From: Dimorphilus gyrociliatus
Taxonomy: Eukaryota; Animalia; Annelida
Direction: 5' to 3'
Assembly: GCA_904063045.1 (NCBI GenBank)
Contig: CAJFCJ010000001.1
Span: 2,356,001 to 2,420,000 of the forward strand
DNA length: 64,000 bases
The stretch's first letter is position 1, and every line of letters starts with the position of its first letter. Made by a program: the position numbers and the translations under genes. Shown here piece after piece: positions 1,924 to 19,784 of this stretch. The notes beneath the pieces were generated by a model that saw only the letters and a list, made by a program, of their open reading frames with translations, did not search any database and had not been told where the DNA came from.

Positions 1924-3249
1924 ATGACACGGATTGAACACAGTCTGCAATATACAACTTTTTTCTCGTTGTTTCTTTTAATATCTCTTGATGTTGCATA
2001 TTGTGCAACTTCAGAACATAGATTGCTCCAGAAAGTCAAGAATGTGTATGGCGAGAATACTCTTCATGTAAGGCCTGTTTCGAAACCAACAAGTCCGTTA
2101 AATATTGATTTTATGTTGAGTATTGTTCAAATTCTCGATATAAACGTAAAAGATCAATATATAAGTATTCTTCTGTGGAAAAAATTGGAATGGCAAGATG
2201 ACGTTCACCAATGGATACCAAAAGAACATGAAAATATAACTGTATTAGAGATAAAACCAGAAGTTTTATGGACTCCCGATATATATTTATACAACAAGTA
2301 AGATTTTTAAGTTGTTCTTTTTATGAAAGATTGTCTTATTAGTTTATATCAAAATAATTTCAAAAGTGTTCACAACGATCTGAACGACCAAGAAAAGCCA
2401 AAATCTAATTTGAAACTTTATCACAATGGAAAAACTATTTGGTCGCCTCCTATTGTTTATCGAGCCAGTTGCTCGATTTCAATGAAACATTTTCCTTTTG
2501 ATAGTCAAAAATGCTCTTTAAAGTTTGGTTCTTGGACGTATGATTTAAGAAAGATCAATTTAACGATAGGAAACAATGGAAGTGTTGACATGTCAACATA
2601 TATACAGAATAATGAATTTGATTTGATTAAGACAAAATTAATTCGAAACGAAAAGGTCTATTCTGTAGATGTTGGTACATACGTTGACGTTGTATGCGAT
2701 ATATATGTGAAAAGAAGAAGCGGTTTCTATATTCAGGTTAAATATTTCTATTTTAATACAAGATAACAGTTTTCTTTTTATTTTCTTTTAACAGTATATC
2801 GTAATCCCTCTCATTCTCTTATCAATCAACTCGCCATTGATTTTCTTAATCCCAGAATCTAACGAAAGAATAACATCCGCCATCAGTCTATTTGTGGCTG
2901 ATCTTTTCTTCTTTCTAATTATCATTCAGCTATTGCCACCAAATGATGACATTAAAATAAACTATTATTGTTGGAGTAAGTTATTAATGGACGGATGTAT
3001 TGTATCTCTCTGTATTATTGTATTGTATCTGATTAATAGAAAATATCCAGCAGGGGTAAGATTCAATAGCACGTATAATCGTCCATAACACAAAATATAT
3101 AATTAATCTTTAAATAGGACTATGAAAAAGCAACCGTTACTAAAAAAGCGAAGGAAAAAGTGATGAAGGTCTGCGACATTTTATGCTTACTCATCTCCTT
3201 GATTGGTTTTATTTTAAATGTGATATGTAATATGCCGTATCCTTCATAA
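1924..3249 (+). CDS. Divergent Cys-loop ligand-gated ion channel subunit, nAChR-like, non-alpha; 4 exons (1924-2297, 2367-2736, 2795-3055, 3118-3249), ~378 aa
   Basis: Signal peptide; LWTPDIYLYN (loop A); Cys-loop CSISMKHFPFDSQKC; FGSWTYD (loop B); four hydrophobic helices. GT-AG introns with consistent phases. No vicinal Cys-Cys in loop C. Confidence 0.88.
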
Positions 3250-3765
3250 AAGTTTTCAAGACAAACAGAAAAAACAATAATGAAAACACTTACCTAAAAA
3301 TGAAATGTAAGAATGTACTTTGTCCCTAAAGAAATATAGCTTTTTATATAATCAGACAATTTTAAAAGAATATCAAAAACAAGACGACTAAATAAAAAAA
3401 GAAGTAAAAAACAAAATATAAATGTTGTACAATATGTGAAAGCGGTAAGCGCTTAAGCGTTTATTAAATTCAACATAATAAAATCTCAACTTGAACGAAT
3501 CTTAATAAACTTTTTTATCAATATTTTATAAACTTCAACATTTACACTTAAACTCTTTAAAATATACATCACTTTCTTACATATATGCTTCTTATCTGAA
3601 AGAAATAATGACTACTTAATTAATCAAATGAAAGAATGAAAACAGTAACTATATCCATTAATTGTTTCCAAAGAAACAAGATTCAGGTATATTCTTTAAA
3701 TTTCTAGAGGAGTGTCTGGAAATTCTCTAACAAACACTCACACTTTTCACCTTGATATGATTGCC

Positions 3766-5838
3766 TTCAAAGAAACAATGACATTGCAGTTGTCATTCAG
3801 TTGACCGAAAATATTTGAAAGATATTGTTAATGAAAGTTAAAGACGAAATGTTGAAGACAAATGACTAAAAGAAAGGAAATATTCAAACATTTCAAAATA
3901 GGTTATGCATTTTTCTTGTTTATACTGAGAATAATCCATAACGGTCTTATTGAACGGGCGCTATGGAATTGCTAGCGTATAAATCAATATTATTAGGCAT
4001 TAGTAGTCAACTAGCATGGATCATGTAAAAAAGAAATTATTAACGCAATCGACGCCGTTTATTATGTCTCATTTGACGCCCAATAACGAAATGATTGAAG
4101 CTCTCAGAAAGGAAGCCGTTCTTACCCACGAAGAATCCAATCAAATTATTCAAGACGATACTACAGCCGGAAAATGCATACTACTCATTTGCTTCATTCG
4201 TAAAAAGGACAACAGAAGCTGGACGAAATTCATAACAATTCTCGAACAATACGGAGCAAGTACCGTCTCTTCCATGCTAAGAAGTAAATCAACAGCATCG
4301 GAGGTCGTCCTACCCGATAAACGAACTTTATCCTACCTGGAAACCTGTTTAAACAACATATCGGTTCCCCATAAAATAGTTAAGGAAGTTGCTACCAAAG
4401 TTGTATTGAAAGAAGTCTATCACGACGACGTTTCCACCTTACAAGAAAAAATATTAAATCTTCAGCGGAGTCTACGAGCAGCTTCTCTTGTCAACCCCTC
4501 TCCTGCCCATCCTACTCTACCCCCAATATCGAGGCCGGACTCTGAAGAACGTTCAATGTCGGTCTCGTCGGAAGAGAGCTTCGGCGAGTTGCACGCTCTC
4601 ATCAAACAAAAAGAGGACGCCATCAAGAAGAAGGACAAAGAATACGAGAGATTGAAAAACATTATGAATGACATTCAACAAGAGTACGACACTTTAATGA
4701 ATGTAAATCAAGAGTATTTGAACATTATTACCAATCTTCAAGCAATTCACGATGGCAAAACTCCGAGGAGTGTTGCTGCCGAACGAGATGCTGCAATTTT
4801 AGACATGAAGTCTGCCCTTTTTGAAGCTCAGGAAAAGATTGAATCTCTTCGCACGGAAGTGCAGGAATTAGACGTTAAAGGTACTTGTATTACATAACCC
4901 ACCCACTCATTTTCTATGCTAGATTCACGCAACTAAACCGCTTCCTTTATACTTTCCACAAAAACAGCCAAAGATGCTCAGAGCGCTTTCAATCACCTCC
5001 AAAAAAAAGAACTAAAATACAGAGAAATGTTGGGCTTGCCTCCCGATTCCGACAATGAAAGTGTCGAGAGACGAATTCAAGAATTACTGCAAAACGGAAC
5101 CATGCAGAAAAGCGATCTGGACAAGCTCAAACAAGAACTAAACAAAGTTAAGGAAAGTAGACTGGCCGCTGAAGAGAAACTAAATGCCATCGTTCGAGAA
5201 AAGGAACATATCGAATTCTATATGAGGCAACAAGAGATGACGATGAGAAGGATGAAGAGACAAACTGTTGCTAAACCAACACTTGTTGCGGCCGAGTCGA
5301 CTGTTGTCCAAGCAAAAATTGCGGGTGCCCTTAGACTGCCTTCAATCGAACCGTCGTGTAGGCCAACAACAGGAAAACATCAACAAAAGTTAAACTATTG
5401 TATATTTTGTCGAACTGAGTTTGACAACAGTAAAGCGACGACCTGCAGAGTTCATTATAGAGCGCTGGTGAAAGGTCATTGGATGTGTTGCAAAGACGAA
5501 TGCCATCGAGGAGCTGGTTGCCTACAATTGCCACATATGTATATTGAAATAACAGCCGATAGAAAGGTGTTTTTGACGGACGGAGCCAGATATGCACAGC
5601 TTCTGTAAAAGAATCATTGCCAAATAGAATATTTTTTAGTATAATTCATAATTCAATATTTGAATTTGTTCTTTTAAAAACCTTAACTTGCAGAGTTTTC
5701 CTTTTTTTTCGTATTTGAATACGAAATGATTTTTCTAATTCTTTTTTTTTTATTTTTTACTTTTCATCTTTTTCCATAAACGCATTTTTCCCCTTTTTTC
5801 TACTGTCTATGGCTTTAGTTGTTTCGCTAGTCTTTTAC
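3766..5838 (+). repeat. Left arm of a 2,073-bp inverted repeat (partner 11426-13498)
   Basis: Line-by-line reverse-complement comparison: paired coordinates sum to 17264 throughout, no indels, one substitution seen (5212 vs 12052). Confidence 0.97.
4016..5608 (+). CDS. CARD/death-fold-like domain + coiled coil + C-terminal Cys/His Zn-finger-like protein, copy 1; exons 4016-4880 and 4968-5608, 501 aa
   Basis: A phase-1 GT-AG intron (4881-4967) joins the two listed ORFs in frame. The N-terminal ~90 aa follow a CARD-like pattern (L..EAVLT.EE..QI....T...K..LL..I..K...SW..F...L). Long heptad-rich segments. C-terminal CxxC...CxxH...WxCC...GC...H. Gene structure is firm; domain names are from recognition by eye. 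Confidence 0.75.
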
Positions 5839-6376
5839 GCTCTTCGTTCATTTTAGATTTTTTGAAAATAGATTGAAATTTTTTTAAAGACGTGCGTAAT
5901 TGCATAAGAGCGATCGCCTTCTATAAAGATATGAATATATTAGTATTTAGAAATTTAGTACTTAATTCAAACTATTGATCATTTTACTCTTAAAAAGTAA
6001 TTGAACTGAGTTGTGTTGTCTTTTGCAAAGAGTGCATATTAGATATAAAAACAGCCTTAAATTTCTTAAAAAAGTTACAAACCATTAAAGTTTTCACTAC
6101 GAAACGAAAAATTTGTCTATTATTTTGCTAAAGAAGCGATTATTTAGGTCTAGGAATATTGCTTTAATATTGTATTATGAAGAATTATGTTTTTTTATTT
6201 ATGAGTTGCCCATTTGTTTTTAATAAATTACTAATTTGAAAGTTGAATAAATAACTATGTATTCCATTGAACTGAAACAGATGGTGTTCTATTGTATAAT
6301 TTTTTATAAAGCTGTGCTTGCGAATTTACTGTCAATCGTCCTTTGATTATGTTATAACTATATTTTAGTTCTTTCC

Positions 6377-8457
6377 ATGGAACTTAGATCAAGTGTTTCT
6401 TTTGATAAAAGTGCCAATCCATCCGCGGATCATACTACTGTGGTTATAGGTGACTGCGACATTAAGAAAAATGACTGCATTCGAAACAAACCATCATCGG
6501 AGAATTATCTATCATTTTGGTCGATAAATTTCCTCAAAGATGTCACTGTCGTTGGAATTAAAAGAGTTTTAAGCGGAGGAAATTTAAAATTAAGTCGTAT
6601 TTTATGGCTTTTTCTAATCGTCTTTTCACTTGGCTTCATGTGTTTTCAAGTTCATGACAGAATTACGTATTATCTAAAATATGAAACTGTTTCCAAGCTT
6701 AAATTTGTTCAGTTATCTGAACCAAACTTTCCAATTGTTACAATCTGCAATGAAAATAGAATGATTAAAGGAAAATTAATCGTCGAAATAGACGGTTGAG
6801 CTTATTTTATTTTATCTTTTACGCATTTAAATAAATATTAGATAGTAGTATGTAATGTAAATATTTATGGGATTAAAGGTAAGCGGTATTTATTCGTTAT
6901 AGCCTATGGATTACGAAAATTCAAAGGGATAACAATTCTATATATTATTTAGTAATATTACTAAGACTGTATTAATATGATAAACAAACAATCTTTCAGA
7001 TTCTGATTGTTTATTGCTTGCATTTACAAACCATAATTAATAGCCTACAGACATAATCAGGTGTTTATTAACAATTTTGGTGATAAAGTGTAGTTAGTTT
7101 TCGTAATCTACCAAAAATATGACTGAATTCTTGCTTATCTTTAATCACTTAATAATCTAATAGACATGAGCCTATCCTATGCATTATATGACTATTTTTA
7201 TGTTTAAGATATGAGAATACTAAACAAGTTGAGGGATATTTGGGCTGTATCTCCAGTAAAGGATGATAACTATTACCCTCCAGAAGTGATGAAAAGTTTA
7301 AAGAACAATTCGTATAGAGACTGGTCCATAGTTTATTCTAATTCTAGTCAAACCATCGAAGAAGCAGTAGCAATGGTGAACAATTTTATTCGAATGTTAT
7401 TTTAAAAATTAAATGCCCTTTGATTCAGTGTAAATTCAAGCAAAGGGATTGCGTATATAGTGATATGGGCTATATTTCAACAAACCTGGGACGATGTTTT
7501 CAATTTAACCCACGTAAATAAAGTTTTGATTCTTTACATTTAAAATTTAATTCATTTCCTCTTTTCTAATCGAACAGATCACAAATTAAAACTGTTAGTT
7601 GGTGGGGCAATGGAATCATTTCAAATTTTATTATACGTTGGGCAGGAAGAGTATTTCATTGCAAACTCAGCAGCAGCGGGTTTTAGGGTAAAGAAATATG
7701 AATATACAAATTCTCAATTACTTATTTGAACTTTCAACTTAAAGATACTCTTTCACTCTCCAAGTAAGATATTTAGGATGGCTGAGGAGAGCATATTGCT
7801 GTCTCCGGGATTTCCGTATGGGATTAATATAAAATTTAGGAAAACGCAACAACTCCCCTACCCTTACGGAGAGTGTTCAGATAAAGCCAACTATACTAGA
7901 GTATCTTGCTTAAATAAATGTTTCGAAATTTACGCTGCTAAAGAATGCAAATGTCGAGATATTTCTTTTACAAGTATAGACTAAGAACAGTATTTATTGA
8001 ATTTATATATGAATATATTACAGACGGAAAAGAGTATCCGGTGTGCGCTCCTCTTAACTTATTTTGTCTAAAAGATGCGGAAAAAACGTTTTATAGAAGT
8101 GGGATAGTTGCAAATGCCTGCAAATGCAATTTTGAATGTGTTATGGATCATTATGACTTTACTAATTCAATGGCTATGTTTGGCAATACTTTTCTGGATG
8201 TTTTAAAAGAAATAGTAAATACTTCTTCGAAAGAGATTTCTAAGAATTATATTATGGTCAGCATTTACGTTTCAAACATTATCAGACAAAATTTGATTGA
8301 GAAGCCAGCTTATACGTTGCTAGCTCTTTTATCAGATATTGGTGGAGCATTTGGTTTGGCTTTAGGAGCAACAGTTTTGACCATTTTTGAATTTGTAGAA
8401 TATTTCATTATAATATTCACTAAGCTCATTGTCAGCAGAACGCCAAGACAGAGTTGA
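6377..8457 (+). CDS. DEG/ENaC (ASIC-like) channel subunit A, multi-exon
   Basis: M1 followed by FPIVTICNENR; Cys-rich thumb exons (YPYGEC..CLNKC..CKCR..CKCNFEC); pre-M2/M2 YTLLALLSDIGGAFGLALGATVLTIFEF. Short GT-AG introns. Confidence 0.9.
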
Positions 8458-9052
8458 CAAAATGATAAAATGATTAAATGGTAGTCTATAGTTATTTCAC
8501 AGAAACAACGCCAAATTGAAATTATTCGAGTTTCTGATTTAAGCTTCTCTTGTTAAAAAAATCTACTGTAAACAACAAACAAGAATAACAATACTTGTTA
8601 GACTTGAACCAAACTGTAAAGGATTTTATAACCTTCTTCGGTTGACTTTACTATCAGCCATAAAAATACTTTTACCGGTCATTTTCTTTAGGCTTTTCCT
8701 TGTATACTACTCTGGATTGAGTACTGATGAACATTCACTTAAAGGAAAGAAGCTAGAAGATTACCATTAAAGAGAGAGAAGAGAAAGTAATTCAACTCTG
8801 TGGAAGAAAAATGTAGAATCTCTCATTGTGATATATCTACGTTGAACAATAAAAAGTATTGAATAAAATATATCTGAAAAATATATTGAAATATTAAAAA
8901 AATGTATTATTCAATTTTTTGCTAACATCCAATGGAACATATTCGTAAAAGCAACACTGTCTGTTATCAAGTTGTTTTAAAGCTGTTAAACTTTGTTATA
9001 CTAAAAAGGTTTAGCTGTTGAATTAAATAAGTTTTCTTTTCAGGCTCGTCGA

Positions 9053-10827
9053 CTAATGGTGGTGAACTATTTCAACTTTGCCCTTTCTTTTAAAATTATC
9101 GCAGTAACGTATGAGGATTATGACCAGACCGTCAATTAGCTCGAAAATTGTTAAAATTGTAGCTCCTAAAGCTAATCCAAAAGCTCCACCAACATCCGAA
9201 AGAAGAGCGAGCCAGTTGTAAGCTGCTTTTTCAATCGTGTCTGATCGTATCATAGCGGAGAAGTAGATATGTACAAGTACAAAGTTATCTTCCACTATTT
9301 GAGCAGTAGAATTGTATTGTTCGGCCAAGCTATTTAGAAAGTTGTCGCTAAATTTATTCATAGACGTCATGATATCGTACTGTGTTAAATCACATTCAAA
9401 CGGACAACTACAGGCTAAAAATGCTTCTGTTGCATAATACTCTCGCGCCTTTATAAGTAAACAGCGAATTCTTAGTGGAGCGCATACAGGATACTCTAAT
9501 CCATCTAAATAGAAACAGAAGAATATTATCTCATCTAACTGTACCTTTAGAAATATTCTGTAAAAGTATTCTTACTAGTATAATGAGAGTCTCTACATTT
9601 ACAAATGCTGGATGTATATTTTTGAAAGCAGTCTGCTAAGCAGTTAGATCTTCTGTATATTTTACTGGGAAAACAAGATCCGTAAGGGGATGGAAGTTGT
9701 CGCGTTGATTTTAACTTTAAGCTAATTCCATAAAGAAATCCTGGAGAAAGGAGTATACTTTGTTCCATCATTCGTATTGCTTCCTTCGGATGATGAAGTA
9801 AAATCTTTTTTGAAAGTAAATTGAACAAATAAGTCTGTATGATAATAGTAGTAATTTCAATATGAAAACTACCCTGAAGCCTGCTCCGTACGAATTTTGA
9901 ATAAAATAGTCTTCTTGTCCAACATAGAGCTTAATCACAAGAGCGTTGGATGCTCCGGTATATTTTATTTCAAATTGATGATCTATATATTGATAACGTT
10001 TCGTCAGATTTGATAAAATTGAAAAAAAAATAAAATAAACTGTTATAGAACCAAAGTTAATTTGAAGACATTCGCCCATATCAGTTGATAAGCTTCGTAT
10101 ATTCTCCGTTTGGCATTCCTGCTGCTTGAAGTAGCACTTAAAAATGGATTTTATTTATTATGTCAGTAATGGAGCTTAGTGATTTAGGTTGGAGCAAACC
10201 ATTTTTAAGGTATTATTTAAAGTATGTCCTGCATTCTTATTGAATTGTAACCAATCTCTATACGTATCATTTATAAGATTTTTGTAGGCAACTCTATTTT
10301 GCAGGTTTGTTGGTACCTCATTATATTCGTACGGCCATGACATTTTCATATGTTCCATTAATTCCCTATCTATTGATATGAACATTAACTAAATAATTAA
10401 TATACTTAGATTATACAATCTATTGTATTAAAAGATGTTCCTTGCCGTTAATATATGGCTCAATGTTTCTCTTTATCATTCTATTTTCATTACAGATTGT
10501 AACTGTTGGAAATTTTATGATTTTTAACGGTATATGGTGTAATTTTGATGTTGTTTCGTATTGAAGGAAGAAATTAACTCTATCTTGAATTTGAAAAACC
10601 AAAAATCCCAATGAAAACACAATCAAGAGAAACCAAATAATTCTTCGGATAAAAAATGCATCACTATTCAACAGTTTTTTAACTCCTATTATGCTAAGAT
10701 CTTGGAGGAAGTTAATAATTAAAAAGGTTATAGGAAACCCTTTCGATACATGTTCCTTCTTTTCATTCTCCTCTGCTGTAAAAGTTTCTCGGTTAGGTTG
10801 ATTTTCAGAAATTCTCATTCTATCCAT
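9053..10827 (-). CDS. DEG/ENaC (ASIC-like) channel subunit B, multi-exon, convergent paralogue of A
   Basis: FPTVTICNENR; Cys-rich exons; YNWLALLSDVGGAFGLALGATILTIFEL. Introns at positions matching gene A. Likely ATG at 10827, after an upstream acceptor-like tttag. Confidence 0.9.
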
Positions 10828-11425
10828 TCTTTCGTCTAAATTGTTTGAAAAGTAATGAATAAACATATTTTCTAACACATTAAATATAAATTACTTCAAT
10901 AAATAATTCGTCCCCTTTCCGTCGGTTAATTTAAAGTAAATATGACATTAATTTGATTATCAGACAACTAAAGAGTGTAAATGATCGAATTATGCTTGGT
11001 AAATGAGAAAATAAAGCTTTCCTATAAAAGGACAACATTGCACTAACAATACAAACAAAAATGTCATTTGTGCAATTGTCCTTCCTTAAAGCTCTAAATT
11101 GCTATTACACAGAGGTAAAAAGCAATATCACTAGACAAGAGCAGTAGTCTTATGATGATGAACCTGCTTGTTAAATGGTGGGACTAGTTTTTTACATATT
11201 GATTACAAAAGTGAGATAAAAGAACAAGAATTGTCTAGTCATTTATACTAGTATATTGATGTCATTTCTACAAAATGATATCAATAAGCAAATAGCCTTT
11301 AAAAACCATTGCCTTAGTGGTTTCTACAAAACATCTACAAATATTTAATACTGAGGTATGGCGCTGTTAATTGGATTTATTAAAAAAATGAAAAGAGTAA
11401 AGAATAAATCATATGAAAGTAGAGA

Positions 11426-13498
11426 GTAAAAGACTAGCGAAACAACTAAAGCCATAGACAGTAGAAAAAAGGGGAAAAATGCGTTTATGGAAAAAGATGA
11501 AAAGTAAAAAATAAAAAAAAAAGAATTAGAAAAATCATTTCGTATTCAAATACGAAAAAAAAGGAAAACTCTGCAAGTTAAGGTTTTTAAAAGAACAAAT
11601 TCAAATATTGAATTATGAATTATACTAAAAAATATTCTATTTGGCAATGATTCTTTTACAGAAGCTGTGCATATCTGGCTCCGTCCGTCAAAAACACCTT
11701 TCTATCGGCTGTTATTTCAATATACATATGTGGCAATTGTAGGCAACCAGCTCCTCGATGGCATTCGTCTTTGCAACACATCCAATGACCTTTCACCAGC
11801 GCTCTATAATGAACTCTGCAGGTCGTCGCTTTACTGTTGTCAAACTCAGTTCGACAAAATATACAATAGTTTAACTTTTGTTGATGTTTTCCTGTTGTTG
11901 GCCTACACGACGGTTCGATTGAAGGCAGTCTAAGGGCACCCGCAATTTTTGCTTGGACAACAGTCGACTCGGCCGCAACAAGTGTTGGTTTAGCAACAGT
12001 TTGTCTCTTCATCCTTCTCATCGTCATCTCTTGTTGCCTCATATAGAATTCAATATGTTCCTTTTCTCGAACGATGGCATTTAGTTTCTCTTCAGCGGCC
12101 AGTCTACTTTCCTTAACTTTGTTTAGTTCTTGTTTGAGCTTGTCCAGATCGCTTTTCTGCATGGTTCCGTTTTGCAGTAATTCTTGAATTCGTCTCTCGA
12201 CACTTTCATTGTCGGAATCGGGAGGCAAGCCCAACATTTCTCTGTATTTTAGTTCTTTTTTTTGGAGGTGATTGAAAGCGCTCTGAGCATCTTTGGCTGT
12301 TTTTGTGGAAAGTATAAAGGAAGCGGTTTAGTTGCGTGAATCTAGCATAGAAAATGAGTGGGTGGGTTATGTAATACAAGTACCTTTAACGTCTAATTCC
12401 TGCACTTCCGTGCGAAGAGATTCAATCTTTTCCTGAGCTTCAAAAAGGGCAGACTTCATGTCTAAAATTGCAGCATCTCGTTCGGCAGCAACACTCCTCG
12501 GAGTTTTGCCATCGTGAATTGCTTGAAGATTGGTAATAATGTTCAAATACTCTTGATTTACATTCATTAAAGTGTCGTACTCTTGTTGAATGTCATTCAT
12601 AATGTTTTTCAATCTCTCGTATTCTTTGTCCTTCTTCTTGATGGCGTCCTCTTTTTGTTTGATGAGAGCGTGCAACTCGCCGAAGCTCTCTTCCGACGAG
12701 ACCGACATTGAACGTTCTTCAGAGTCCGGCCTCGATATTGGGGGTAGAGTAGGATGGGCAGGAGAGGGGTTGACAAGAGAAGCTGCTCGTAGACTCCGCT
12801 GAAGATTTAATATTTTTTCTTGTAAGGTGGAAACGTCGTCGTGATAGACTTCTTTCAATACAACTTTGGTAGCAACTTCCTTAACTATTTTATGGGGAAC
12901 CGATATGTTGTTTAAACAGGTTTCCAGGTAGGATAAAGTTCGTTTATCGGGTAGGACGACCTCCGATGCTGTTGATTTACTTCTTAGCATGGAAGAGACG
13001 GTACTTGCTCCGTATTGTTCGAGAATTGTTATGAATTTCGTCCAGCTTCTGTTGTCCTTTTTACGAATGAAGCAAATGAGTAGTATGCATTTTCCGGCTG
13101 TAGTATCGTCTTGAATAATTTGATTGGATTCTTCGTGGGTAAGAACGGCTTCCTTTCTGAGAGCTTCAATCATTTCGTTATTGGGCGTCAAATGAGACAT
13201 AATAAACGGCGTCGATTGCGTTAATAATTTCTTTTTTACATGATCCATGCTAGTTGACTACTAATGCCTAATAATATTGATTTATACGCTAGCAATTCCA
13301 TAGCGCCCGTTCAATAAGACCGTTATGGATTATTCTCAGTATAAACAAGAAAAATGCATAACCTATTTTGAAATGTTTGAATATTTCCTTTCTTTTAGTC
13401 ATTTGTCTTCAACATTTCGTCTTTAACTTTCATTAACAATATCTTTCAAATATTTTCGGTCAACTGAATGACAACTGCAATGTCATTGTTTCTTTGAA
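11426..13498 (-). repeat. Right arm of the 2,073-bp inverted repeat (partner 3766-5838)
   Basis: Reverse complement of 3766-5838 with one substitution. Confidence 0.97.
11656..13248 (-). CDS. CARD-like + coiled coil + Zn-finger-like protein, copy 2; exons 13248-12384 and 12296-11656; protein identical to copy 1
   Basis: Mirror image of 4016-5608; ORF translations are identical. Confidence 0.75.
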
Positions 13499-14254
13499 AG
13501 TAAGCATATTCAAGTCAGTATATATAGGGGAAAATTTCACCAATTGCTATTGTATATTTTGTTTAACGATACTTTACAAGATGCAGTAGAGGAGTATCTA
13601 AAGAAAAATTGTATATGGCGATTAGAGTCGAAGTCTAAAGTTTGAAATCATTTCAACTTTGTTCAAATCATTGAAGCATTGTTTGGCAAATGCCAACTAT
13701 CCTTTTTTGAAATTAAGTGGTAGCTTATACAATGTTTAATGTAATTACAGACTTTATTTCAATATTTTGAACAAATAGTACAATTGCTCTGTTTATTCTC
13801 GTTAATTGATAAATAATTATGTTAACTATATTAAAGTTTTTTTTTCCTTTCATTTAAATGCATTACATTATTTGTCTTTTTTTCTGGTTTCTTTTGTGAC
13901 CTGAAAATCTCTTTGTTATATATAATTTCAATATAACTCTGAAGAGTAATAAAAACTTTAAGAGACGTTTAATTTAGAAACTTGGACCATCAGAAAGTAG
14001 AGTTAATGTTAATAGAGATTAGTTAATTGCCTGAAATTTATCTGTGAAACAGTCTCCAAAAGAGTTAAATTACTTAATATTATAGCTTGTTAACATACTT
14101 TATTTATTTCTATTAGATTGTTTTCTGAAACTTTCTGACTAATTAATTTAATAATACTGAAAGATGAATAATGTACAGTATACTGTAGATGAGATTAAGT
14201 AGGTTGTCCTTTGTTCTAAGTTGTAACCAATCTGTATGAGGGGTTTATTAACAG

Positions 14255-14812: not shown

Positions 14813-15401
14813 TCAATACAGAAAATTATTCTTGATCAAAATTATACTAGTAACACCAAAACTAGCATCCAATAGCGATAGGAGAATTACGGCAAATTTC
14901 CACATCATTTCAATATTTTCAAGCTCGTTGTCATAGAATATATTGACAGAGTAGAATGTGATTTGAAAGAGGATAACTGGAAAATATGCGCAGGAAGAGA
15001 TAATGAGGAAGCCTTTTCTCTTTAATATATTATAAAATTATTATATAAATATTGCGTGATGTATAAATATACAAACCCATTTAAATGATTTTATCGTCAT
15101 AAGTATTTGACAAATCAAAGATAAAATAATAATTGTTAGGAAACAGGGTATTATATACATAACAAGACCCTTCTTTGCCCGAAAAACTGTACACATATTC
15201 AGCCAAATCATTGAAAATATAAGGAAAGTTCTAATGGTAATATTTCTTGATACTTCAATTTTTACTAAATTCTTTGCGAAATAAGGGATGAGCAACTGCT
15301 TCCAGTCATATAATTATATATATATATATATATTCCAATTCAATTGGATAAATAACTCTTACCGGATTACGATCAGACCCACAATTAAAGATGTTAGCCA
15401 T
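14813..15401 (-). CDS. Four-TM protein resembling TM3(end)-TM7 of a divergent rhodopsin-family GPCR; exons 15401-15363, 15295-15077, 15019-14813, ~154 aa; possibly truncated or a pseudogene
   Basis: Two phase-0 GT-AG introns join three open exons. Motif order: SDRN..LLIPYF (DRY-like), MIWL (TM4 Trp), YIIPCFL (TM5 Pro), SCAYFP (TM6 CWxP-like). Confidence 0.45.
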
Positions 15402-17130: not shown

Positions 17131-19784
17131 ATGTCTAATTTGTATGTAAAAAAGAATTCAGCATTGGAATTATTTCTTTTAAGATATAATGCAAAATATT
17201 ACAAAGAGATCATAACAACAGAAAGCTGTATTATTGATAATGGAAGCTCTCATAAGCATAAATTTGTTATTCTTGCTCCAAATTCAATAGATTTTACAGA
17301 TAAGCCACCAACGAAGTTACAAACTGGTATTCATTTTTCAATCATTCATTCAATTAAATTAGTAAGTATATAGTATTATTTGTATTTTAATTTCTAAATA
17401 AAGTATTAATATTAATCATTAATTAATTAATTGATAAGAAACTAAACAAAATTGGATATAATGTTTTGTTATCAGAAGTTTCAAAATGATCGTAACTAGG
17501 ACATAACGGTCCATTCTGTAATTTATTACTAAAAAAAACAATGTATTTGCATAAATATTACCGAGTTAATACTGTTTTGTTATATGTTTTTATTTTGTCT
17601 ACCCTATTTATACAATTTGGCATGTTTATGTCTTTTTTTATTAATGTATATAAGGATTAGAGTATATGTTTACAATAACAAACGGCCGTAAGTCTCTTAC
17701 TAATTTAGATTGGTCTAAACAGCTCTTTTTTTTGGTTTTCTACAATCTTTACCATCATCATTAAACAAAATTCTATAAATATAATATTAATATATGAAAT
17801 GAACACTCCTTTGTTCTTATCTTTTAGTTTCCTGCTTTTATATATTTCTCTCAATAACAGTCCGATGAGCTACCGTCATTTCTATCTGGTCATGATCGTT
17901 TGAATGTTCAACATATCATAATAGAATATAGAGACGGTATTGAAGAATCACAACAGGGAAATTCACTTCAGTCATTAGCGTCAACAATATCTACTAAATC
18001 TACTTCGTCGTTAGCATCCTCGTTATCATCATCGTCGTCCTCGTCATCTTCGTCAACGTCTTCAAAACATTCGTCAAAAGGACCGACAAAAAAATCTTTT
18101 TTTAACTTTAAAGCCAAGCCCAGTAAAAATAAATTGGAATTGCTCTCTTCAAATGATATTGACAGCAAAGCAAAACAAAGTTCTAAATCATCTATATCTT
18201 GGTATGACTCATATTGAATTGGTTGTTTAATGATTCATAACTAATGACGAAAATATTTTACAGCCTTAAAAACTTCACTTTAAAGAGAAAAGACATTTAC
18301 ATTTTAAGGCAGTCATCAACCATTTATATGTTAATTAAATCAGCAATAAATAATTATAAACTTGTAAGTATTGATTTCAGTGTTTAGAGTTTCACCCTAT
18401 AATTATTCCTTAACTCTTTTACTTGAAAAGCGTTCCACCTTATCCCTTCATACAACTGTAAATAATCACTTACAAGATAATAATAAACATTCAATGTAAG
18501 CGTCTTTTAATGAAGAAGATTGGATAAGATAATCCAAAGATATATTTATATATATTTGTTGCTTTCTATCTTAATTACAGGAACCACAAAAGCTATTTTA
18601 CACTTGAAAATGAGATTTTAAATCATCAATGTTCATATGTCAATCATTCTAATGATATATATCATTCAATAAAACAGCTATATATAGCTTCTCTTGGAGA
18701 TTTTAATGCAAAAAAACATTTCTGGAAGGTATTTTTACAATGTTTATTTATACTACACAATATAATCATATTCTTTCATATCAAAACTTTCAGAATCCTA
18801 GTCTTTTTCGTCAATTATCATCTATATTATATTTTACAACGTTCAATAATAACTTGGAAAATCACTTTAAATCCAGTTTCAAACTGATGTGTGCAATTAT
18901 TAGAACGTTAATAAGTATGCTAACAGAAACTGAAGCAGTTGAAAATATTCAAACGATATTGGAAATTAATCAGGGAAGAACTTTAAAGAAATTGATTTAT
19001 GTAAGTTGTTTATATTATTACAAGGTAATATTGGAATTCATATATCTATAGGTCTTAATTGAAAGTCATCCAGAACTTCTTGTAAAACTGGAATCTCAGA
19101 ATCAAAAGGTTACTATTTCAATATCTTGAAAAATATTACTATTCAATAAACAATTTCTCTCATAGTTATTCCATGTTTACAATGAATATTTCGATTTGAC
19201 CGTCATTCTATTAGACAAGCTAATTGTTGTTATTGAACAAACAACATGGGTTATAAAAGAGAATGCTATCCTTAGCTCTGTTTGGATAATTGAATATGCT
19301 AAATCCTTACTTAGTTTGGTTTGTCATCTTTAATACTTATATTAAACTTTCTTTATGAGAATTTTTCACTTACATTAGGATGGATATATTGAAACTATTA
19401 CTAAGAGTATAATTGATACTTTTAAGCCAAATTCAACAATTCACTTGAATCCTGAATGTTCGATTATACTCTACCATCAAGTAAAAGTACTTAAGAGACT
19501 GATTCAGGAAGTTGATGGAGTTAAAGAAACTTTAAGAAGTCAATTCTATGAAGAATTTTTGTAAGTTTATCATCAGTTATGAATAAATTTGCATATAATT
19601 GAAATTCTTCAATTACAGATATTATTTAACAGTTTCATCCATTAATAATAAAGATATGACATGCGATCCAATCAGAGAAATAATACTTAAAACCTTAGAG
19701 CATATTATCAAAGAAATTACTCAGAGGCCATTTTCTCTTCAAACTACTAAGCAATCTATAAATTTATCCGATTCGTCGTCCTAA
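17131..19784 (+). CDS. C12orf56: C12orf56 (DUF4551-type) homologue, multi-exon
   Basis: N-terminus KKNSALELFL...ESCII...KFVIL....FTDKPP..L and next exon DELPSFLSGHDRLNVQHIIIEY match my recollection of vertebrate C12orf56 (RRNSRLDVFL...EPCIV...KYVVL...LTENPP; DDYPEFLSSPDREISQHIRIIY). Ser-rich insert; C-terminal EEF.YY. Confidence 0.75.

Follow-up and report, generated by a model that had tools for sequence, protein, structure and literature searches.

Near-identical inverted copies of a CARD gene around two old DEG/ENaC channel genes in Dimorphilus gyrociliatus, probably maintained by gene conversion

We identified a gene palindrome in the 64,000-nt stretch of Dimorphilus gyrociliatus DNA analyzed here (the window), in which 2 arms carrying the same CARD gene enclose a unique 5.6-kb spacer with 2 old paralogous DEG/ENaC genes, and we consider it probable that an old local inverted duplication has been kept near-identical by intrachromosomal gene conversion from arm to arm. 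The left arm (3766–5838, forward strand) has 2,073 bp, comprising 250 nt of 5′ flank, the CARD gene, and 230 nt of 3′ flank, and the right arm (11426–13498, reverse strand) is the same except at 12052, the mirror of 5212. Recomputing the comparison reproduced what the initial annotation had reported, with the arms aligning in a single ungapped register with 1 mismatch in 2,073 positions and no indel (identity 99.95%). The mismatch, C at 5212 and T at 12052 on the gene strand, is a synonymous third position of an Ile codon, and dS between the arms was 0.003. Pfam matches to CARD and ASC agreed with the proposed order, CARD > ENaC-A > < ENaC-B < CARD. Whole-genome DNA, protein, and profile searches of D. 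gyrociliatus found only 2 copies of the arm.

The assembly was made from pooled worms with PBcR, Quiver, Pilon, HaploMerger2, and SSPACE-LongRead (PMC7854359), a history that could allow an assembly or polishing artefact, either 1 CARD copy written twice or moderately diverged copies equalized by read correction. We regard this as improbable, as the 4 arm junctions are 4 different unique sequences with no N gap, the 5.6-kb spacer is unique, the arms retain 1 difference, and the ragged arm edges and GC excess described below would be unexpected. Read correction may mask a few differences but cannot make the structure. Missed-adapter chimeras are hairpins that lack a unique spacer.

The CARD gene is intact in both arms and encodes an identical 501-aa protein with a CARD, a coiled coil, and a Btk-type zinc finger. 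The left copy (4016–5608, forward strand) has exon 1 at 4016–4880, an intron at 4881–4967, and exon 2 at 4968–5608; the right copy (11656–13248, reverse strand; exon 1 at 13248–12384, exon 2 at 12296–11656) matches the NCBI model DgyrCDS617. The CARD domain (PF00619) scored 26.3 and 24.6 bits against a Pfam cut-off of 23.9, and a structure model matched the CARDs of Apaf-1 and CARD8 (TM by target 0.59–0.68, E > 0.1), while a fold search with the whole-protein model gave weak CARD and coiled-coil matches only. The zinc-finger residues C433, C436, C448, H451, C462, C463, C473, and H478 are invariant across the family, and PF00779 was matched by 12 of 22 family members (best E 1e-6), this protein taken alone falling under the cut-off. 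Upstream of the gene, a conserved proximal promoter lies within the arm (3910–4015, forward strand; mirror at 13249–13354), with 87% identity to a related species across 119 nt and a 55-nt identical run (3949–4003) that includes a TATA-like box.

The arm gene belongs to a conserved annelid family, with orthologues in Capitella teleta (ELU04896.1) and Ridgeia piscesae (KAK2181715.1); its distant annelid homologues had no ENaC within 10 kb, which is uninformative for large genomes. CARD9 and CARMA-type adaptors likewise have a CARD at the N-terminus and a long coiled coil after it, whereas the C-terminal Btk-type Cys/His finger sets the arm protein apart as a separate, uncharacterized family. 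Sequence searches gave no match to CARD9 or CARMA, including by phmmer against solved structures, and these adaptors were nearest by language-model features (Atlas) at 0.80, which is the chance level and serves as a lead only. The gene represents a conserved annelid adaptor, so far unstudied, with a CARD, a coiled coil, and a zinc finger.

Both channel genes in the spacer are intact. ENaC-A (6377–8457, forward strand) has 6 exons, at 6377–6794, 7209–7375, 7429–7513, 7578–7687, 7745–7973, and 8024–8457. ENaC-B (9053–10866, reverse strand) also has 6, with intron positions as in ENaC-A, a GC-AG first intron, and a start at 10866 or 10827. Matches to PF00858 (ASC) were found in 4 channel exons. 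The 2 proteins are 45.5% identical with saturated silent sites (pS 0.73), and their longest identical run is 17 nt; the 5 introns are matched in position, with sequences aligning no better than shuffles. The earlier description of channels roughly half identical with unrelated introns held, and the comparison of dS that it proposed sets near-identical arms against saturated channels. The best solved relative was ASIC2 (E 4e-43). As known here from sequence, they resemble other DEG/ENaC channels in a full-length PF00858 domain, 2 membrane segments, and a cysteine-rich ectodomain, and differ from them in having Val/Ile-Gly in place of the pre-TM1 His-Gly and Gly-Ala-Thr in place of the Gly-Ala-Ser filter. 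Both replacements are common to ENaC-A, ENaC-B, the orthologue of the relative, and several of the D. gyrociliatus paralogues, the family having dozens of members in the genome.

Channel gene models came from a spliced aligner. ENaC-B was searched exon by exon, its joined exon models and those of the relative were used in the alignment and tree, and whole-protein searches used NCBI models. Exon by exon, ENaC-A and ENaC-B were mutual best or tied-best matches. In the tree, from which the near paralogues C9, C10, C47, C77, C92, and a second C23 gene were left out, the topology (A,(B,relative)) had support of 97/96 and the 3-gene clade 100/99, and a clade of A with B was rejected (p-AU 0.031). 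These sequences indicate that the split of ENaC-A from ENaC-B predates that of D. gyrociliatus from the relative. A search for a full-length ENaC-A homologue gave no match, and the 18 candidate Logan proteins included no ENaC-A orthologue that was closer.

The NCBI model DgyrCDS616 (977 aa) links the left CARD copy to ENaC-A by a predicted intron (5605–6387, forward strand) whose donor overlaps the CARD stop and whose acceptor at 6387 is good. For the B-side copy, the first canonical poly(A) hexamer lies outside the arm, 275 nt after the CARD stop; for the A-side copy, the distance is 614 nt. Read-through of the left copy and splicing into ENaC-A would yield a sodium-channel subunit with a death-fold adaptor (CARD, coiled coil, and zinc finger) at the cytoplasmic N-terminus of its DEG/ENaC part; we consider this quite improbable. 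At the CARD stop of the relative an equivalent donor is lacking, and a join introduced by gene prediction is more likely, transcripts of the left copy having been mapped to the other arm.

For comparison we used the 14.2-kb contig L052 of this relative (SRR23372229, Logan). It contains 1 CARD directly upstream of an ENaC-B orthologue, followed by the right-hand anchor, a small membrane-protein gene located right of the palindrome in D. gyrociliatus (14813–15304, reverse strand) and in the same orientation in the relative (9473–9935). This is the only CARD copy over the 14.2 kb, the contig ending at a microsatellite 231–249 nt upstream. Neither ENaC-A, nor a second CARD, nor remnants of either were identified in the contig, including its downstream 9.6 kb, and orthologues of the intervening RING and 201-aa frames of the relative were absent near the D. 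gyrociliatus locus. The arm gene and its orthologue share 88.5% amino acid identity with saturated silent sites (pS 0.79). Relative to the anchor, CARD and the ENaC-B orthologue have the orientation of a flipped spacer, from which it seems that the spacer was inverted at least once between the 2 species. As to the same layout in a sister species, a check named in the initial annotation, this contig has CARD beside the ENaC-B orthologue and lacks the palindrome itself, with its second CARD and ENaC-A; the proof that a second species could give, both copies there and alike within the species, does not appear in it.

These observations bear on how the CARD copy arose. Duplication of CARD and ENaC as one ancient unit, as the initial annotation had suggested, is plausible from the position of CARD beside the ENaC-B orthologue and the symmetric spacing from arm to channel (692 vs. 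716 nt), and under conversion it is the version that we tentatively hold, at somewhat short of even confidence. Against it, one CARD and no adjacent ENaC-A are found in the relative, so that a staggered-break inversion could have produced the second CARD at a later time; that CARD was duplicated in this way in the D. gyrociliatus line and has since been converted is a weaker possibility. A very recent inverted CARD duplication without conversion, by staggered-break inversion of a convergent ENaC pair already in place or by templated insertion during break repair, is unlikely, although 1 mismatch in 2,073 requires nothing more, and a relative with a single CARD and with the ENaC-B orthologue oppositely oriented to the right-hand anchor is what it predicts. 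In Drosophila, unique sequence is commonly found duplicated in inverted orientation at inversion breakpoints (17 of 29 inversions, up to ~1.9 kb; PMC1885836). A recent event would, however, have to invoke chance for the part-matches at both junctions, for the symmetric spacing, and for a span fitting the transcription unit, and a young copy leaves the base composition of the arms unexplained.

Weak homology extends past both ends of the arms, a feature that the initial annotation had overlooked. It reaches ~15 nt beyond the outer ends, where 3751–3765 part-matches 13499–13514 (11 matches in ~16 columns), and at the inner ends it extends 25 nt, with 5839–5863 part-matching 11403–11425 (~18 matches in 25 columns). 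As homology anchored at the arm ends, the inner edge had p 0.004–0.009 and the outer edge p 0.02–0.05, with a joint p of ~0.001. Apart from the channel genes, no homology between flanks was found further out than these first 15–25 nt; longer outer and inner matches that were significant with simple nulls disappeared with composition-preserving nulls and strict scoring. Junctions with older homology are contrary to the clean new junctions expected of a staggered-break inversion duplication and compatible with an old event of this kind that was later eroded. Template-switch repair also yields short imperfect junction matches.

The arm gene is also raised in GC. Its GC3 was 0.393 against 0.259 in the orthologue of the relative, a 13-point excess, whereas neighboring control genes had 0.26 against 0.22 (interaction z 2.1, p 0.04); these tests are modest, involving 1 gene and ignoring between-gene variance. 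No other coding stretch of the window reaches this value (17 stretches, 0.20–0.35), and it exceeds those of 60 of 62 sampled long frames. The arm intron is likewise GC-rich (33 of 87 nt, 0.38, vs. a background of 0.24; p 0.002). In D. gyrociliatus the excess is confined to the arm gene, and the 3′ flank within the arm shows no rise (0.24). Conversion in palindromes is reported to leave raised GC (PMC8981503, PMC3723533), but in Drosophila conversion is not clearly the cause of raised GC in converted tracts (PMC3924832). Decayed homology at both arm ends together with raised GC suggests that the arms are older than apparent, and through these 2 features the proposed arm-to-arm conversion of an old duplicate gained indirect support.

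Under the preferred conversion model, the arms would pair by folding back, and a break in one would be repaired from the other 5.6 kb away, with tracts that span the whole 2-kb transcription unit and favor G/C. Beyond this unit, homology would have worn down to the sharp, slightly ragged borders, and the channels would have left conversion after diverging too far for pairing. An occasional arm-to-arm crossover would reverse the 5.6-kb spacer, and the layout of the relative fits 1 such past inversion. Each flip would be near-silent, because either channel brings along 540 nt of its own upstream sequence and the arms are alike. The outcome would be a CARD protein in 2 equal doses and 2 distinct channel subunits.

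A regulatory device, either a channel cassette that switches by inversion or a 2-kb double-stranded stem formed by read-through for silencing, is very improbable. The arm geometry does allow inversion by crossover and the gene order of the relative fits a past flip. The cassette is not a switch, because neither promoters nor coding sequences are displaced by a flip: no promoter-gene pairing is altered within ~2.8 kb of either channel start. Neither a recombinase gene nor a recombinase site is involved, and even human palindromes in active conversion seldom invert (PMC3723533). The stem would need a 9.7-kb transcript through 2 genes and antisense through 2 more, and both CARD mRNAs are same-sense. 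Passenger genes between inverted repeats could also recall a foldback or Pack-type transposon with the arms as long terminal inverted repeats, to which we give almost no credence. Unless more copies lie in unassembled DNA, this candidate is refuted by the lack of a 2–15 nt target-site duplication, the presence of only 2 copies and no dispersed termini in the genome, the conserved host gene in the arms, with its Capitella and Ridgeia orthologues, and the lack of a transposase.

Conversion between inverted gene copies is already known from Amy, Hsp70, and mammalian sex-chromosome palindromes, and the D. gyrociliatus locus offers an invertebrate example in which near-identical duplicates need not be young, to which it adds a GC signature that can be measured and a related species with the spacer in the other orientation. 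Should most gene-sized palindromes in this 78-Mb genome prove old and converted, the rate, tract length, and GC bias of intrachromosomal conversion in a spiralian could be conveniently measured in D. gyrociliatus. Drosophila Amy-p/Amy-d, Hsp70Aa/Ab, and Hsp70Ba/Bb are likewise linked inverted copies a few kb apart, kept near-identical by ectopic conversion with diverged flanks (PMC3924832). In contrast to these, the copies described here are convergent, their identity takes in the intron and 230–250 nt of both flanks, the spacer has 2 old paralogous genes, and the contig of the relative shows 1 copy. Mammalian X/Y palindromes likewise have arms that are more than 99.9% identical and enriched in GC and a spacer invertible by rare crossover, and their mean conversion tract is reported as ~2 kb, the size of the D. 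gyrociliatus arm (PMC8981503, PMC3723533). Their arms are far longer, and conversion in D. gyrociliatus is inferred only; the analogy drawn in the initial annotation applies to mechanism alone. Staggered-break inversions similarly leave a unique gene doubled in inverse at the ends of a segment flipped relative to a 1-copy outgroup (PMC1885836), and such an outgroup, with the segment in opposite orientation, was seen in the relative, where ENaC-A is absent. Those duplicates are decayed (~88% identity) and often nonfunctional (PMC1885836), whereas the D. gyrociliatus arms are 99.95% identical and intact.

We aligned the left arm (3766-5838, + strand) without gaps to the right arm (11426-13498, - strand), and the sole mismatch was found at the silent Ile position 5212/12052, with both arms encoding an identical 501-aa protein on translation. 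The near-identical arms with 1 synonymous difference and no indel described in the initial annotation were thus borne out, as was its layout, with an intact six-exon DEG/ENaC pair enclosed by the arms. No third copy of the arm gene was identified in the D. gyrociliatus genome (77.9 Mb, 349 contigs) by DNA, protein, or family-profile searches, and no target-site duplication was found at the palindrome. The window covers positions 2,356,001-2,420,000 of contig C1. The assembly was built from PacBio reads of pooled worms using PBcR, Quiver, Pilon, HaploMerger2, and SSPACE-LongRead (PMC7854359), and it is very improbable that the arms were created by this assembly. A nicotinic-receptor-type ligand-gated channel gene (1924-3250) adjoins the left arm upstream, without a duplicate on the right.

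The arm gene (4016-5608, +; 11656-13248, -) encodes an N-terminal CARD scoring slightly over the Pfam cut-off, a coiled coil of ~220 residues, and a C-terminal Cys/His domain with 8 invariant metal-type ligands; in 12 of 22 relatives, the second half of this domain gave a Btk match. Its family comprises ~60 uncharacterised relatives (20-45% identity), including named members in Capitella teleta and Ridgeia piscesae, and its likeness to CARD9/CARMA adaptors is limited to layout; we infer that the protein acts in the cytoplasm as a scaffold or signalling adaptor. A 55-nt non-coding run (3949-4003, mirrored at 13261-13315) is identical to positions 171-225 of L052, a 14.2-kb contig from a second, dinophilid-like species, at a distance where silent sites are saturated. 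This stretch marks a conserved core promoter inside the arm, and each arm therefore comprises a whole transcription unit. The run contains a Myb-type site and, ~37 nt ahead of the start, a TATA-like box. It also includes an upstream ATG, out of frame with the gene, which in both species opens a short reading frame overlapping the main start.

The right-arm gene corresponds to NCBI model DgyrCDS617, and in model DgyrCDS616 (977 aa) an intron (5605-6387) links the left CARD gene with ENaC-A. On the B side, the canonical poly(A) hexamer closest to the CARD stop is found beyond the arm, and on the A side it is far more distant; this placement would allow read-through on the left. Gene models were predicted with AUGUSTUS, PASA, and EvidenceModeler (PMC7854359), and DgyrCDS616 is more likely a prediction join, a real fusion being very improbable.

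ENaC-A (6377-8457, +) and ENaC-B (9053-10866, -) are convergent and share 5 intron positions. The initial observation that they are roughly half identical with unrelated-looking introns held, with 45.5% amino-acid identity, pS of 0.73, and introns that gave no alignment; no converted patch was found between them, the longest identical run being 17 nt. In both, the His-Gly motif is missing its His and the filter reads Gly-Ala-Thr, as in several paralogues of the expanded family. More than 100 DEG/ENaC matches were identified over many contigs of the genome, and loss of this His with a Ser-to-Thr filter change is found in the subfamily including ENaC-A and ENaC-B. A further convergent pair of this subfamily was identified on contig C23 (25,935-30,704), and equal-scoring ENaC-family match pairs on C114 (67,272-71,385, convergent) and C2 (2,742,447-2,752,630, tandem) are probably additional near-identical local duplicates. 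The first intron of ENaC-B (10445-10370) is GC-AG, and its counterparts in ENaC-A and the second species are GT-AG.

The second species, represented by Logan contigs from 3 runs (SRR23372229, -228, and -216), carries an orthologue of the arm gene (88.5% aa, pS 0.79). L052 has the order CARD, ENaC, and an unrelated RING-bearing stretch, followed by the genes found right of the palindrome, with no break from CARD through into the channel. The channel on L052 shares 59% identity with ENaC-B and 45% with ENaC-A, and the 3 channels form a single clade (support 100/99) against 6 close and 3 distant paralogues; paralogues outside the tree had lower summed three-exon scores than ENaC-A versus ENaC-B, with 2 exons near-tied. 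Within the clade, the tree (A,(B,relative)) was supported at 97/96 and an A+B clade was rejected (p-AU 0.031), so the ENaC-A/ENaC-B split is older than the species split. Only 1 CARD and no ENaC-A were found on L052, which starts at a microsatellite upstream of CARD. Relative to the right-hand anchor gene (14813-15304, -), CARD is placed like the left arm and the channel is of B type, which is the flipped-spacer order minus one unit. In a third sample, ERR14224706, CARD has 1.3 kb of unbroken upstream sequence, suggesting a single copy. Local micro-inversions are common in the region around the palindrome; a DUF4551 gene (17,131-19,718; L052 10,595-13,039) is inverted between the species, with flanking genes on both sides keeping orientation.

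Three histories are compatible with the gene order, each requiring 3 events. The initial annotation had proposed that CARD and ENaC were copied long ago as one unit, with CARD converted since. Old arms kept alike by conversion are the likelier reading overall; the single-unit origin, with loss of one unit in the relative, is itself plausible but tentative. The spacing between each arm and the first conserved motif of the adjacent channel is symmetric (692 versus 716 nt), which mildly favors this origin over a second history, somewhat doubtful, in which an old convergent ENaC pair was joined by a CARD duplicated through a staggered-break inversion (a mechanism described in PMC1885836) in the D. 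gyrociliatus line, followed by conversion. Two tests distinguished old arms from young ones, the first on the arm ends and the second on GC content. Beyond both ends of the identical tract, 15-25 nt remain at ~70% similarity (inner p 0.004-0.009, outer p 0.02-0.05, joint ~0.001), and homology stops there, which fits eroded borders of a formerly longer tract. Imperfect junction matches may also arise by template-switch repair. The third history, a very recent staggered-break inversion duplicating CARD without conversion, is unlikely, because a young copy at 0.3% silent divergence could not have gained the GC excess of the arm gene, which long GC-biased conversion could produce. GC3 of the arm gene is 0.393 versus 0.259 in its orthologue and exceeds all other coding stretches within the window; the controls (ENaC-B and downstream genes) differ less between the species, at 0.26 versus 0.22 (interaction p 0.04). 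The arm intron has 38% GC versus 24% in neighbouring introns (p 0.002), and the orthologous intron is ordinary (0.25). Both the arm-end and GC tests are modest and concern 1 gene. GC-biased conversion raises GC in primate palindromes (PMC8981503, PMC3723533).

Under conversion of old arms, a break in one arm would be mended on the other through fold-back pairing, with non-crossover repair removing differences over the 2-kb unit and a rare crossover flipping the 5.6-kb spacer. Such an inversion would exchange the outer flanks beyond the arms with each gene keeping its own promoter, so the flip should be close to silent. The suggested invertible channel cassette agrees with the gene order of the relative, but its action as a switch is unsupported, and so is a 2-kb RNA stem, which would need 9.7 kb of read-through. 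The functional outcome would be one protein at double dosage alongside 2 diverged channel subunits. The palindrome probably belongs with palindromic duplicates under concerted evolution, the single CARD on L052 leaving that membership short of proof. Mechanistically it resembles the palindromic Amy and Hsp70 gene pairs of Drosophila (PMC3924832), and it is a miniature likeness of the mammalian X/Y palindromes.
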